This document shows, one piece after another, positions 12,169-63,283 of a stretch of DNA of 64,000 nucleotides. Position 1 is the stretch's first letter. Each line of letters begins with the position of its first letter. The notes beneath the pieces are model-generated. The model was not told the origin of the DNA and searched no databases. It saw nothing but the letters and a program-made list of their open reading frames with translations. Where the stretch lies: the NCBI RefSeq assembly GCF_035084215.1, contig NC_090328.1, positions 6,014,001 to 6,078,000 of the forward strand, in the 5' to 3' direction. The stretch comes from Heptranchias perlo (Eukaryota). The position numbers and the translations under genes are program-made.

Positions 12169-12220
12169 ATGGGAGGTCTCTGGATGCTGGTCCCACTCTT
12201 GCTATCTGTGCCTGGCTCCG
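12169..12220 (+). CDS. SIGLEC15-like: Gene A exon 1: signal peptide MGGLWMLVPLLLSVPGS(G)
   Basis: ATG at 12169 in context AAGATGG, 17 mostly hydrophobic codons, donor G|gtatgt. Phase 1 joins in frame to the V exon at 20446. Too short for the ORF track. Confidence 0.8.
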
Positions 12221-13887
12221 GTATGTACTGATCACTGGGCCTCTGTAACTAGCCGAGGGCTGACAGACCATCGGAGAACTAGGAACAAGCTGAGGGAGGG
12301 AGGGAGGGAGTTGGATCAGCTCAGGTATTTAGACCAAGAAGGATTTGAGAGTAAAAAGAAAGCAAAAATTAATTGATTGCTCCCCCCCCCAATCTTTCCC
12401 TTTTCTCTAGTTCTGTTGTTTTATAAAATGTATTATCTTTCAGTTCTGAGGACTTAAAAGGATTTTTTTTTATTCGTTCATGGGATGTGGGCGTCGCTGG
12501 CAAGGCCAGCATTTATTGTTAAATAATTAATAATAAATTCTGAGGACAGGGTGCATAAAGTTGGCTTGCGTTCCCCTTGAGTATAGAAGATTGAGGGATG
12601 ATCTGATCGAGGTGTTTAAAACGTTAAAAGGATTCGATAGGGTAGTTACAGAGAAACTATTTCCTCCCTGGCCAGGAAATCAAGAACAAGATGACGCAAA
12701 CTTCACATTAGATTTAGACGGTTCAGGAGTGAAATCAGGAAGCACTTTTTCACACAAAGTGTGGTGGAAATGTAGAACTCACCCCCTCTAAAAAGCTGTG
12801 GGTGCTGGGGGTCAGTTGGAGCTTCCGAGGCTGAGATCAGTAGATTTTTGTTGGGTAAGGGATATGGAGCAATGGCGGGTAAATGGAGTCAAGGTGCTGA
12901 TCAGCCATGATCTGATTGAATGGCGGAGCAGGCCCGAGGGGCTGAATGGCCTCCTGCTTTTCCTAAAGATTTACACCTGAAGAGTGGCCTGACTTGTGTT
13001 GTCTGTACAGGTGCTGCCTGACCTGCTGAGCGTTTCTTGTTTTTTGTTTGAGATTGTTGAGTATTGGGGATTTTAGGTTAAGACAGAAGCACCAATTGTG
13101 AGGAGCGGAGATGAGAGGCTACCTAACCGGTTTCTACAACTAATGGGAGCTCAGGCGTTGGGTTGGTACCAGTGTATGAAGGGAGGGGTCGCCTCATAGC
13201 TCTGAGTTCCATCCTCCCAGCAAAATTAGAAGTGGTTGCTCACTGATTCATGAATGGGATGTGTAGGGCAAGCTGGGGAAAGTCCTTAAAGTGTTGAGTA
13301 TTGGGGCCTGCTGAAAGTCCCTGATGTTATCCCATCCCAAGCTGCTCACTTCCCCTCCCCCACCTTCTGTCCATCTCCGAGACTATATTCACCTCTGGAC
13401 CTGCCACCACCTACCCGCCTTTCCTGCCCCACCTACCCACCCACCTCCTGCCCCACCTACCCACCCACCTCCTGCCCCACCCCAAATCTGAGATCTTCAA
13501 TTATGCTTTAGTTACTTCCAGGCATGATTTCTCCAACACCCTGGTGTTGGACATTGGGTGAGAGTGAGGTCAGGCACTGATCACACTATACTACCAAGTT
13601 GTGCAAAACTCTACCGTGGAAAGGGTGTCAAGTCCTTAGAGAGGGCGCAGTGGGGATTTACCAGAACGGTACCAGGGATGTGGGACTTCAGTTATGTGGA
13701 GAGACTGGGGTTGTTCTCCTTAGAGCAGGGAAGGTTAAGGGGAGATTTAATAGAGGTGTTCAAAGTTATCAGGGGTTTTGATAGGGTAGATGGAGAAACT
13801 ATTTCCACTGGCAGAAGGATCAGTAACCAGAGGACACAGTTTTAAGATAATTGGCAAATTGGGAGATAGGGAGAAATGTTTTTTTTA

Positions 13888-16085
13888 TTCGTTCTTGGGA
13901 TGTGGGCGTCGCTGGCGAGGCCGGCATTTATTGCCCATCCCTAATTGCCCTTGAGAAGGTGGTGGTGAGCCGCCTTCTTGAACCGCTGCAGTCCGTGTGG
14001 TGAAGGTTCTCCCACAGTGCTGTTAGGAAGGGAGTTCCAGGATTTTGACCCAGCGACGATGAAGGAACGGCGATATATTTCCAAGTCGGGATGGTGTGTG
14101 ACTTGGAGGGGAACGTGCAGGTGGTGGTGTTCCCATGTGCCTACTGCCCTTGTCCTTCTAGGTGGTAGAAGTCGCGGGTTTGGGAAGTGCTGTCGAAGAA
14201 GCCTTGGCGAGTTGCTGCAGTGCATCCTGTGGATGGTACACACTGCAGCCACGGTGCGCCGGTGGTGAAGGGAGTGAATGTTTAGGGTGGTGGATGGGAT
14301 GCCAATCAAGCGGGCTGCTTTATCTTGGATGGTGTCGAGCTTCTTGAGTGTTGTTGGAGCTGCACTCATCCAAGCAAGTGGAGAGTATTCCATCACATTC
14401 CTGACTTGTGCCTTGTAGATGGTGGAAAGGCTTTGGGGAGTCAGGAGGTGAGTCACTCGCCACAGAATACCCAGCCTCTGACCTGCTCTTGTAGCCACAG
14501 TATTTATGTGGCTGGTCCAGTTAAGTTTCTGGTCAATGGTGACCCCCAGGATGTTGATGGTGGGGGATTCGGTGATGGTAATGCCGTTGAATGTCAAGGG
14601 GAGGTGGTTAGACTCTCTCTCGTTGGAGATAGCCATTGCCTGGCACTTGTCTGGCGCGAATGTTACTTGCCACTTATCAGCCCAAGCCTGGATGTTGTCC
14701 AGATCTTGCTGCATGTGGGCACTGACTGTTTCATTGTCTGAGGGGTTGCGAATGGAACTGAACACTGTGCAATCATCAACGAACATCCCCATTTCTGATC
14801 TTATGATGGAGGGAAGGTCATTGATGAAGCAGCTGAAGATGGTTGGGCCTAGGATACTGCCCTGAGGAACTCCTGCAGCAATGTCCTGGGGCTGAGATGA
14901 TTGGCCTCCAACAACCACTACCATCTTCCTTTGTGCTAGGTATGACTCCAGCCACTGGAGAGTTTTCCTCCTGATTCCCATTGACTTCAATTTTACTAGG
15001 GCTCCTTGGTGCCACACTCGGTCAAATGCTGCCTTGATGTCAAGGGCAGTCACTCTCACCCCATCTCTGGAATTCAGCTCTTTTGTCCACGTTTGGACCA
15101 AGGCTGTACTGAGGTCTGGAGTCGAGTGGTCCTGGCGGAACCCAAACTGAGCATCGGTGAGCAGGCTGTTGCTGAGTAAGTGCCGCTTGATAGCACTGTC
15201 GATGACACCTTCCATCACTTTGCTGATGATTGAGAGTAGACTGATGGGGCGGTAATTGGCCGGATTGGATTTGTCCTGCTTTTTGTGGACAGGACATACC
15301 TGGGCAATTTTCCACATTGTCGGGTAGATGCCAGTGTTGTAGCTGTACTGGAACAGCTTGGCTAGAGGCGCAGCTAGTTCTGGAGCACAAGTCTTCAGCA
15401 CTACAGCTGGGATGTTGTCGGGGCCCACAGCCTTTGCTGTATCCAGTGCACTCAGCCGTTTCTTGATATCACGTGGAGTGAATCGAATTGGCGGAAGACT
15501 GGCTTCTGTGATGGTGGGGATATCGGGAGGAGGCCGAGATGGATCATCCACTCGGCACTTCTGGCTGAAGATGGTTGCAAACGCTTCAGCCTTGTCTTTT
15601 GCACTCACATGCTGAGCTCTGCCATCATTGAGGATGGGGATGTTTACAGAGCCTCCTCCTCCCGTTAGTTGTTTAATTGTCCATCACCATTCATGACTGA
15701 ATGTGGCAGGACTGTAGAGCTTTGATCTGATCCGTTGGTTGTGGAATCGCTTAGCTCTGTCTATAGCATGTTGCTTCCGCTGTTTAGCATGCATGTAGTC
15801 CTGAGTTGTAGCTTCACCAGGTTGGCACCTCATTTTTAGGTGCGCCTGGTGCTGCTCCTGGCATGCTCTTCTACACTCCTCATTGAACCAGGGTTGATCC
15901 CCTGGCTTGTTGGTAATGGTAGAGTGAGGAATATGCCGGGCCATGAGGTTCTGAATCTGTCCCATTTAGCACGGTGATAGTGCCACACAACACGTTGGAT
16001 GGTGTCCTCAGTGCGAAGACGGGACTGTGCGGTGGTCACTCCTACCAATACTGTCATGGACAGATGCATCTGCGACAGGTAGATT
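13888..16085 (-). mobile_element. CR1-clade LINE, family A, 5'-truncated, with an intact 555-aa RT ORF (13941-15608)
   Basis: NYRPISLL, QFGFR, LDIKAAFDRV, GVPQGSILGP and FVDD motifs; inserted into a T-run of a family-B CR1 (13620-13880 resumes at 16087). Confidence 0.92.
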
Positions 16086-62001: not shown

Positions 62002-62370
62002 TTTTCTTCAACCTCCAGACAGTGAAACCAATCAAAACAAGGAGGATGAATAAAATGGCGGACCCAATGTACAGAGAGATCGTCAACATGTCCCTCTCAG
62101 TGGCCCATAAGTGGATCTGACGGACGTCCCTCCCGTGCTCATTTACAGCCACACATCTGTAGTTCCCTCTCAGCGTTGGGTTAAGAATCTCTCCGACAGT
62201 TTGATGTTTTTCCAGGAGTTGTGTGACTGTCGTGCTGTTCCCGGGCAGTGCGCTGTTTTCAGGGTCGATCCATGTGATGTTTGCAGGTGGCTCCCCTTCG
62301 ACCTTACACACGATGGTGTCTCCGGTTATGTTATCGGTCACGACAGACAGCTCCAGGATGGTGGCTGGGG
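62002..62370 (-). CDS. SIGLEC15-like: Gene B C2-set plus TM exon
   Basis: Acceptor tctttcttccccaag| (in-frame tandem cag 6 nt further in), donor AAAA|gtaagt, phase 1-1. PATILELSV..CKVEGEPPANITWIDP..GNYRCVAVN, TM MLTISLYIGSAILFILLVLIGFTVW then RLKK. Confidence 0.92.
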
Positions 62371-62923
62371 CTTGGGGAAGAAAGAGACAGTGAGTTAACT
62401 CAATCTAATTAATCTTTATTTGTTGGTCCGTTGCGATGAAATCCGTTACGTAGAGCTGAGAGACACGTGAGCATAGAGGGGTGACGCCCAACAGGAGGAG
62501 ATTGGATTGAAATATTCCGTGAGGGAACGGACTGGCTCCTGATCGAAAGGGACGCAGGTTTGATGTTAATGGAGGAGGCGGATGGAAGTTGACCTGAGTG
62601 AGTCTGTGGATCTTAACAATGCAGCGACTTCGAAACTGAACAGCCTCCTAAACCTCCGCTATGGCGGCAGGAAACGCACGCTCATTACGAGGCAGAAGTG
62701 CGCCGCCATACAGATTGGAAAAGGCAACAAAAATCACGGTGCAGTGACCCACAGAGGGAAATAGCCTGAGTGAGTCTGAGGAGCCCAGGTTCATCAATTG
62801 GAATTACAGTGTTTCAGGCCTATCTCAAGTTCTCAGCTCCTCACTGGGAGTGAATTTGCTCTTATGTTTGTTCAACATCTTTTTATCGTTTTCCCAACAT
62901 CACTGACGTATATGTTTCCTTAC

Positions 62924-63283
62924 CGACAACCTGTAGCCTCATCTCATCCTGAGTCACGTTTTCCCCATCTCCATTCTTGACGTGTACGTGACAGAAATAC
63001 TTGCTGGTGTCGTTCAGCCCCAGGTCCCTCATCCTTATGGAGGCGTCTCCTTGGGTTGGGTCTCCGATCAGCTGATATCGCTCTCCTTTATTTACAGTAA
63101 CTGAGTCAGAACCATCCCTGAGGGAACGAGTTTGACTAAAAACAACCGACTCTTTCCATGGATTCTCCTTCATCCAGAGGACAGTGATGTTGCTCGGATA
63201 CTGGTCAGGGGGACTGAAGGTGCAGGGCAGTGCGGCAGAATCTCCCTTGTTCACAGTCACTCGCCAGATATTGTTCCTATCAG
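62924..63283 (-). CDS. SIGLEC15-like: Gene B V-set exon (Siglec-15-like, YFCH instead of YFCR)
   Basis: Minus-strand acceptor ttctctatctcag|, donor GTCG|gtaagg, 360 nt, phase 1-1. AALPCTF..ITVLWMK..ERYQLIGDPTQGDASI..DTSKYFCHVHV; clear paralogue of gene A exon 2. Confidence 0.92.

Follow-up and report, generated by a model that had tools for sequence, protein, structure and literature searches.

A 64-kb stretch of genomic DNA from the sharpnose sevengill shark Heptranchias perlo (accession number, NC_090328.1; hereafter the window, which contains no N) carries one whole gene (gene A, plus strand) and most of another (gene B, minus strand) of a Siglec-15 cluster, arranged convergently, tail to tail. 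Gene A is interpreted here as the shark SIGLEC15, and gene B as a paralogue of the Siglec-15 lineage that is probably the inhibitory half of a paired receptor family; a probability of roughly 0.7 is assigned to this reading. Siglec-15 has been presented as the single immune Siglec that all vertebrates have kept and as always activating, via DAP12 and a lysine in the membrane, and fishes have been said to lack inhibitory Siglecs of the CD33 type. A literature search turned up no publication dealing with Siglec-15 of cartilaginous fishes and none describing a tyrosine motif in the Siglec-15 tail. Both genes already exist as automatic RefSeq models, and the novelty lies in the interpretation, not in the sequence. 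If correct, it gives a concrete and testable picture of possible inhibitory sialic-acid sensing in the oldest jawed-vertebrate lineage, and it bears on how Siglec-15, a target of human immunotherapy, became a lone activating receptor.

Four immunoglobulin (Ig)-domain exons were located in the window, all with AG/GT borders and phase-1 ends, and were assigned by Pfam to V-set and I-set/Ig_3. Proteins were named by a search of 1.84 billion cluster representatives and subsequently by a word-indexed search. The V and C2-plus-transmembrane exons of gene A were 100% identical to RefSeq XP_067838214.1 (SIGLEC15), and the domain exons of gene B were 100% identical to XP_067838218.1 (RefSeq "Siglec-12 isoform X3"); between the two genes, identity was 41% in V and 46% in C2 plus transmembrane helix. 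The original prediction, made from the letters of the window only, had placed here two convergent genes, each of V, C2 and transmembrane (TM) parts, between positions 12169 and 63283. The two are indeed paralogous, convergent Ig receptors, and the two positions are the ATG of gene A and the first base of the in-window V exon of gene B, but gene B has the layout V1-V2-C2-TM with V1 outside the window.

The top match among PDB chains was human Siglec-15 (7zoz) for gene A V (7.5e-16; next CD33, 3e-07), gene B V2 (1e-11; next TIM-3, 3e-08) and gene B V2-C2-TM (2.6e-24; CD276 second, 6e-16), as the predicted likeness to Siglec-15 had implied, and the next family scored 11-28 bits lower for every domain arrangement. 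CD33 and Siglec-5/8/10 reached 22-34 bits versus 48-61 bits for Siglec-15, which gives no CD33-related membership. Gene B V2-C2-TM was collinear with human Siglec-15 over 240 residues, and the motifs LPCTF, GRY-L-GDP and YFCRVE were common to Siglec-15 and the shark genes. An AlphaFold model of gene A (mean predicted local distance difference test score, 83.9) showed two Ig domains and one helix (246-278), and its V domain superposed on 7zoz with a template-modelling score of 0.88, a root-mean-square deviation of 2.3 Å and 31% identity; in the Foldseek search with the whole model, mostly generic V-C pairs (Fab light chains, PD-L1) were returned and only the 7zoz row was informative. Genes A and B are thereby supported as receptors of the Siglec-15 lineage. 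That they belong instead to a non-Siglec V-C2 family (B7/CD276-, TIM- or CXADR-like), the resemblance arising from shared Ig features, is hardly credible, even though CD276 was the second match of gene B, TIM-3 and JAML ranked after Siglec-15 for gene B V2, NCBI labels some relatives of gene B 'CXADR-like' or 'CD276 antigen homolog', and Foldseek put generic V-C pairs first. Against it stand the bit-score gap for every domain, the collinearity, the common motifs, and a C2 tree (built with no non-Siglec outgroup) in which A and B nest among bony-vertebrate Siglec-15 and Siglec-15-like proteins, beside the lysine-bearing clade of the latter vertebrates.

In the structure of human Siglec-15, the relevant residues are the disulfides C64-C142 and C95-C104 together with R143, W44 and Y87 (PMC10264397). 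By alignment, the B-F cysteine pair with YFC was present in both in-window V domains and the C95-C104 pair was absent, as had been claimed; an equivalent of the latter was absent from A-type proteins, B V1 and B V2, and present in bony-vertebrate Siglec-15. The F-strand arginine (human R143, which contacts the carboxylate of sialic acid) was found in gene A and in gene B V1, and is replaced by histidine in B V2. Gene A V has no second (C'-C'') cysteine pair and no equivalent of human Trp44. Compared with tetrapod and teleost Siglec-15 (human Q6ZMC9; 7ZOZ), the shark genes thus share the signal peptide, V-set domain, single C2-set domain, membrane helix and short tail, the B-F disulfide, the arginine of YFCRVE (gene A, gene B V1) and a tail S-x-Y motif lying about equally far from the membrane. 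They differ in having neither the mid-membrane lysine (human K274) nor the C95-C104 pair, gene A in lacking Trp44, and gene B in having one V domain more and a tail of 146 residues.

Gene A was resolved into six exons with canonical splice sites (Table 1), the donors of exon 1 (CCG|GTATGT) and exon 3 (GAG|GTAGGT) both being in phase 1. RNA-type data were available as contigs of four runs (X1-X4) from one sample, which show presence and not level, and were placed on 27700-33699. The four runs held 0.27-0.29 of the words of 20446-23118; because this equals the exonic share (786/2673), the runs behave as transcript assemblies. A GT..AG joint 29112->30051 was present in contigs of 1381-1491 nt in 4/4 runs, and therefore the exon encoding SKYCKV is in the mRNA of gene A. 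In a contig of 1483 nt, the sequence preceding the joint agrees with exons 1-5 and about 47 nt of 5' untranslated region (UTR); past the stop the contigs run on in the 3' UTR as far as a repeat that starts at about 30557.

SKYCKV, one of two tail motifs originally predicted for gene A, is accordingly borne out by the RefSeq protein, by the contig joint and by orthologues carrying the motif. The 31-nt exon 4, absent from the first model, sets the frame for the SKYCKV exon; with this exon left out, the motif would not be in frame with the strong donor of exon 3 (23118), and a weak donor at 23122, proposed as the source of the frame, is unneeded. The other motif, SRYTNL (32980-32997), is in frame with the strong donor of the membrane exon and had been placed in an exon at 32942-33047 on the plus strand, which was rejected: low-depth contigs span 32601-32994 and cross its acceptor unspliced, the terminal exon of the transcript starts at 30051 instead, and SRYTNL is not in the RefSeq protein and has no orthologous counterpart. 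Orthologues end like gene A exon 6 (for example, Pristiophorus ...SLPEVTCTAEKSMAVNTQ). A perfect 15-nt inverted match, AATCTACAAAACAGA, was noted between the SRYTNL pseudo-exon (32992-33006, plus strand) and the last exon of gene B (33555-33569, minus strand), and in the alignment of the two the acceptor and the tyrosine codon also coincide; the pseudo-exon may be a decayed inverted copy of a B-type last exon.

The membrane segment of gene A reads ...VVDEDGLLLK252-LIISILAGSLVLVILIVIALAIW-RRKR. Because the 23-residue hydrophobic core comes after the lysine, K252 lies at the outer edge of the helix and not in mid-membrane; the membrane helix of gene B has no basic residue and hence no lysine. 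The claim that neither gene has a mid-membrane lysine was therefore upheld, with the reservation that gene A has K252 at the edge. The mid-membrane lysine makes the contact with DAP12/DAP10 and has been described as conserved between fish and mammals (PMC7226832); in agreement, ...LG[IVLA]K... was found at mid-helix in all bony-vertebrate Siglec-15 compared (mammal, bird, frog, lungfish, coelacanth, sturgeon and characiform). By contrast with the bony vertebrates, it was missing from the SIGLEC15-named gene of 14/14 chondrichthyan species examined. At the K252 position, A-type proteins have Lys in 8 sharks, Arg in Pristiophorus, Tyr in 4 rays and skates, and Leu in Callorhinchus.

The gene A tail is 44 residues long with one conserved S-x-Y-[CS]-[KE]-V motif, which, itself or as a close variant, was present in 12 of 13 elasmobranch A-type proteins (SKYCKV, STYCKV, LDYSEV, SNYCKV, TNYCEV, QQYSKV, VQYLKV, SEYSKV and others), Mustelus having Phe for Tyr; the tail of Callorhinchus is short and different. 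In bony vertebrates the Siglec-15 tail has S-x-Y-E-N-[LFVI] (mammal SNYENL, bird STYENF, lungfish STYENV, sturgeon SSYENI), and bird ...LQDSTYENF and shark ...KQDSSKYCKV look homologous. Reviews describe the Siglec-15 tail as being without a motif of the immunoreceptor tyrosine-based inhibitory motif (ITIM) type (PMC11652361; PMC7226832); mammalian SNYENL literally matches the ITIM signature, taken here as [I/V/L/S]-x-Y-x-x-[L/V] (PMC7226832), with T-x-Y-x-x-[V/I] as that of the immunoreceptor tyrosine-based switch motif (ITSM). Because the gene A motif resembles S-x-Y-E-N-[LFVI], it was probably inherited rather than newly gained, and what is distinct in sharks is more likely the loss of the mid-membrane lysine in gene A than its tail tyrosine. 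Re-wiring toward inhibition, predicted for both genes, therefore probably does not apply to gene A; the tail of gene B is of the inhibitory type, and more strongly so (ILYSSV, TLYSTV) than had been predicted. In the rays Pristis, Mobula birostris and Hypanus, the A-type tail has grown to 150-250 residues by tandem repeats of the PEVN/TPEEN type, inserted between the tyrosine motif and the conserved ...PEQDTE[GV]SDK end.

An alternative is that gene A is a one-to-one orthologue of SIGLEC15 that is still activating, K252 pairing with an adaptor that has an outer-leaflet Asp in the manner of FcR-gamma, and the tail tyrosine serving endocytosis or Grb2-type signalling, as in tetrapods. In Fc-alpha-RI, GPVI and similar receptors, an arginine at the outer edge of the membrane pairs with FcR-gamma. 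The NCBI name SIGLEC15 (given to the A type in all 14 chondrichthyan species in which it was recovered, Callorhinchus included), the higher score of mammalian Siglec-15 with the A type than with the B type, the Lys or Arg at the K252 position in 9/9 shark species and the tetrapod-like tail motif are in its favour, and a minimal interaction of Siglec-15 with FcR-gamma, perhaps independent of the lysine, has been noted in a review (PMC7226832). This alternative is considered unlikely, though not negligible, in view of the Tyr in 4/4 rays and skates and the Leu in Callorhinchus, the position of K252 four residues after the acidic DED-G stretch with 23 hydrophobic residues beyond, and the C2 tree, which joins A with B and not with the lysine-bearing bony-vertebrate clade (96/95).

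Gene B, the proposed inhibitory paralogue, was rebuilt exactly from the window for the in-window part of isoform X3 (V2 to stop), with AG/GT at every junction. Because RefSeq residues 1-148, which make up V1, have no counterpart in the window, V1 is placed beyond position 64000. V1 keeps both the tryptophan (GWSMETP) and the arginine (YNCRVDF). Siglec binding sites are located in the N-terminal domain, so that the histidine of V2 says little on ligand binding by gene B. In isoform X2 (V1-V2'-V2-C2-TM), the cassette at 51638 is omitted and a further, near-identical V2' exon, located past the end of the window, is included.

The 146-residue tail of gene B is encoded by six cassette exons and the AIYAAV exon, spread over 29 kb, and contains ILYSSV, TLYSTV, VYENC, PVYSII twice and AIYAAV. 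Because each cassette is frame-neutral (all are in phase 1-1), any of them could be skipped or duplicated. AIYAAV, as predicted, is in the last exon of the RefSeq model, and rays, sharks and chimaera have kept the motif (AIYATV, EIYATV, CIYATV, VIYATV, VIYAVV; kept in Mobula, Narcine, Rhinoraja, Heterodontus and Callorhinchus). The segment 35984-36464, with cassette 6, matched 51254-51738 (cassette 2) at 97.5% and 59911-60334 (cassette 1) at 90%; in addition, 51577-51973 and 63615-64000 are duplicates (92% identical), the latter of which runs to the end of the window and holds an orphan cassette copy in the V1-V2 intron, upstream of the V2 exon. By these alignments the tail cassettes appear to have multiplied in part by local segmental duplication, and the V2 exon would have been duplicated together with its surroundings, because isoform X2 shows a near-identical V2' further on.

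The same observations could mean that the cassette tail is an over-extended automatic model, the real transcript using few or no cassettes over 29 kb of repeat-rich DNA. Consistent with this are the lack of a spliced joint for gene B in the contigs covering 27700-33699, the location of cassettes 1, 2 and 6 in segmental duplicates, the orphan copy within an intron, and the differing use of cassettes by isoforms X2 and X3. Such an over-extension is nevertheless quite improbable, since every cassette has AG/GT borders, a polypyrimidine tract and phase 1-1 ends, with a frame that holds in any combination; the same unit logic (D-P-Q-E...[VI]-Y-S-x-[VI]) and the closing x-I-Y-A-[AT]-V recur in Mobula, Narcine and Rhinoraja, and related Y-S and I-Y-A motifs in Heterodontus and Callorhinchus. 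Inclusion of the motif exons in gene B mRNA is predicted from the RefSeq model, the canonical splice sites and the tails of orthologues.

A third H. perlo paralogue (XP_067838506 / XP_067838211; same chromosome record, outside the window) has a V-V-TM layout, a tail with CTYADI, CTYANL and VTYAAV, and in V1 an extra cysteine pair that is absent from genes A and B.

A search with the ectodomain of gene B returned B-type relatives throughout Chondrichthyes, in two forms. Form 1 has a mid-membrane lysine (...CLIPL[IV]KFLLLL[IV]TGIILF.KIK) and a tail of 1-4 residues, and was found in at least 13 species (Cetorhinus, Heterodontus, Mustelus, Chiloscyllium, Rhincodon, Pristis, Hypanus, Leucoraja, Rhinoraja, Mobula hypostoma, Hemitrygon, S. 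torazame and, in a variant form with a 16-residue tail, Callorhinchus). Form 2 has a helix without lysine and a long tail of [PVIL][VI]YS..[VI] units, mostly ending in x-I-Y-A-[AT]-V, and was found in seven species (H. perlo gene B, Mobula birostris, Leucoraja, Rhinoraja, Narcine, Heterodontus and Callorhinchus LOC103188797). From their sequences, the two forms have the pattern of a paired activating/inhibitory receptor family. The prediction of an inhibitory-type family in cartilaginous fishes consequently applies to the form of gene B and not to the family as a whole, in which many B-type relatives keep the mid-membrane lysine and are almost tail-less; likewise, the predicted expansion exists as a Siglec-15-derived family, of which gene A, conserved in 14 species, is not a recent member. 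A- and B-types were on the same chromosome record in 9 species; in S. torazame their locus tags follow one another on a scaffold of 141 kb, and in Callorhinchus their annotation numbers are adjacent. Because Callorhinchus has both types, the A/B split predates the chimaera-elasmobranch divergence.

Receptors without the lysine and with tyrosine tails were assumed in the original prediction to be a chondrichthyan theme, which did not survive the wider search. Lysine-less Siglec-15-like proteins with the V-C2-TM layout and tyrosine motifs, like those of the shark, were found in sturgeon (XP_034780823; IYVNV), bowfin (IYMNM), Conger ('siglec 15, like'; IIYADI/VCYAEV), coelacanth (XP_064409626) and caecilian (XP_029438890; CTYADI/VTYAAV, identical to motifs of the third H. 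perlo paralogue XP_067838506). In the C2 tree they branch outside the A+B clade of the chondrichthyans and, unlike gene B, they have one V domain and lack cassette repeats. Inhibitory-type relatives of Siglec-15 may therefore be ancient, and the theme is not restricted to cartilaginous fishes.

Phylogenies were built from 76 V domains (quick search) and 40 C2 domains (careful search). The V tree recovered the A-type (99), B-V1 (94) and B-V2 (95) clades. The C2 tree recovered A (99/97), B (96/95) and A+B (96/95), with lysine-bearing bony-vertebrate Siglec-15 as a separate clade. The A+B grouping fits a duplication on the cartilaginous-fish stem, and the best, though not settled, reading of the trees makes A and B co-orthologues of the SIGLEC15 of bony vertebrates. 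One may also entertain the idea that tetrapod SIGLEC15 has its true orthologue in the gene B lineage and not in gene A: WSM...FTHP and Trp44 are retained in B V1, and the lysine helix in B-type activators, but mammalian Siglec-15 scores higher with the A type, and the trees either do not resolve the point or join A with B.

Several results weigh against gene A being SIGLEC15 and gene B its inhibitory paralogue. The C2 tree sets A+B apart from bony-vertebrate Siglec-15, but the approximately unbiased (AU) test does not reject A or B grouped with the bony-vertebrate proteins (p = 0.104), and the backbone of the V tree did not resolve. Only one cassette motif each of gene B fits the strict ITIM (ILYSSV) and ITSM (TLYSTV) signatures, and PVYSII and AIYAAV do not. 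The last exon of gene B had next to no contig depth within 27700-33699, and no RNA joint. The lysine-bearing form 1 members are documented in species other than H. perlo. Finally, K252 of gene A (Arg in Pristiophorus), which is kept in sharks, could pair with an adaptor.

The mechanism proposed for the cluster was drawn from motif rules, which suggest ligand binding, phosphorylation, recruitment of phosphatases and lack of adaptor pairing as follows. V1 of gene B would bind a sialylated ligand, Src-family kinases would phosphorylate the tail tyrosines (ILYSSV, TLYSTV), and phosphatases of the SHP-1/SHP-2 type would dock on the tail and damp signalling, the number of cassettes tuning how strong the signal is. 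The inhibitory role in the pair would fall to gene B, and the activating members, in other species, would be those that keep the mid-membrane lysine and have almost no tail. Gene A, a type-I membrane protein, would probably bind sialic acid without tetrapod-style DAP12 coupling.

The nearest functional parallel is with the mammalian CD33-related Siglecs (paired Siglec-5/14 and Siglec-11/16), which likewise have a sialic-acid-type V domain, a membrane-proximal ITIM with a distal ITIM-like motif or ITSM, nearly tail-less activating partners that have a basic residue in the membrane, and local duplication in a cluster. They differ in belonging to another lineage (CD33 and Siglec-5/10 scored about 30 bits below Siglec-15) and in the cysteine pattern, and the V-V-C2 layout and cassette-exon tail are those of shark gene B. 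Teleost LITRs and NITRs also comprise activating and inhibitory forms with similar ectodomains, in clusters that evolve by birth and death; unlike the shark genes, they are built from other Ig domain lineages and have no Siglec-type arginine. A broader proposal, for which the odds are put slightly short of even, is that chondrichthyans built a paired Siglec-15-derived family (V-V-C2, with a cassette ITIM/ITSM tail) before the chimaera/elasmobranch split, and that this family fills the role of the CD33-related Siglecs. Shark SIGLEC15 would have lost the DAP12-type lysine, the lysine module surviving in paralogues only. Taken with the lysine-less relatives of sturgeon, bowfin, eel, coelacanth and caecilian, this would make Siglec-15 ancestrally part of an inhibitory/activating pair, of which amniotes kept the activating half alone.

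Table 1. Exons and related features of genes A and B in the 64-kb window
Feature	Position	Strand	Content	Remark
Gene A exon 1	12169-12220	+	ATG and signal peptide, MGGLWMLVPLLLSVPGS	100% to XP_067838214.1 residues 1-18
Gene A exon 2	20446-20847	+	V-set; B-F Cys pair; YFCRVEV (Arg kept)
Gene A exon 3	22735-23118	+	C2-set and transmembrane helix; ends WRRKR
Gene A exon 4	26132-26162	+	31 nt; GTAKFTPQSTG	Carcharodon orthologue GKATFTPATKS
Gene A exon 5	29057-29112	+	56 nt; YKQDSSKYCKVNLDQQQS; ITIM-fitting SKYCKV at 29073-29090	RNA-type contig joint
Gene A exon 6, coding	30051-30094	+	VVICTAAKPMEVNN; stop TAA 30092-30094	RefSeq, contigs
Gene B V2	62924-63283	-	V-set; YFCHVHV (His at Arg position)	first base of in-window V exon, 63283
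Gene B C2-TM	62002-62370	-	C2-set and transmembrane helix; ends WRLKK; phase 1
Gene B tail cassette 1	60239-60310	-	72 nt; phase 1-1; PQEPGSVPVHSVVNDAVSQQAET
Gene B tail cassette 2	51567-51638	-	72 nt; DPQEAGSVPVYSIITGTVSQQAET	skipped in isoform X2
Gene B tail cassette 3	42442-42513	-	72 nt; DPQESESLILYSSVHVLRFHQTET; canonical ITIM ILYSSV
Gene B tail cassette 4	41879-41950	-	72 nt; VRESESTLYSTVNTPKLARAQQT; canonical ITSM TLYSTV
Gene B tail cassette 5	39758-39793	-	36 nt; VYENCSTRASED; Y-x-N (VYENC)
Gene B tail cassette 6	36297-36368	-	72 nt; PQEAGSVPVYSIITGTVSQQAET
Gene B last coding exon	33550-33593	-	AAIYAAVVKSTKQN and stop; AIYAAV at 33591-33574	RefSeq; motif conserved in relatives
Orphan tail-cassette copy	63615-63677	-	DPQEPGSVPVYNIITGTVSQQ	upstream of V2 exon, gene B V1-V2 intron

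Fragments of long interspersed nuclear elements (LINEs) and tandem arrays are abundant across the window and are the only features of positions 1-12000; an Rfam search of the window gave no match. A 32-bp tandem array (69 copies, 91% matches) occupies 23281-25493, starting about 160 bp after the membrane exon of gene A, and accounts for the strong purine skew and the long spurious open reading frames there. Minisatellites were located at 7742-9240 (37/73-bp unit, 40 copies), 27822-28307 (40/81-bp unit, 12 copies) and, in the gene B tail region, 47164-47697 (20/30/50-bp unit, about 26 copies). Intron 1 of gene A contains a LINE at 13941-15608 (minus strand) with an open reading frame of 555 aa and a reverse transcriptase domain (6e-38), and the tail region of gene B contains a LINE with endonuclease and reverse transcriptase together with an approximately 90%-identical inverted copy (53056-54944, minus strand; 43616-45698, plus strand). 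Short repeat families at 28300-29800 and 30500-31500 had summed contig depths of 1e4-3e5 versus 23-123 for the gene A transcript, and the interspersed repeats of these introns are thus abundantly represented in the RNA-type sample.

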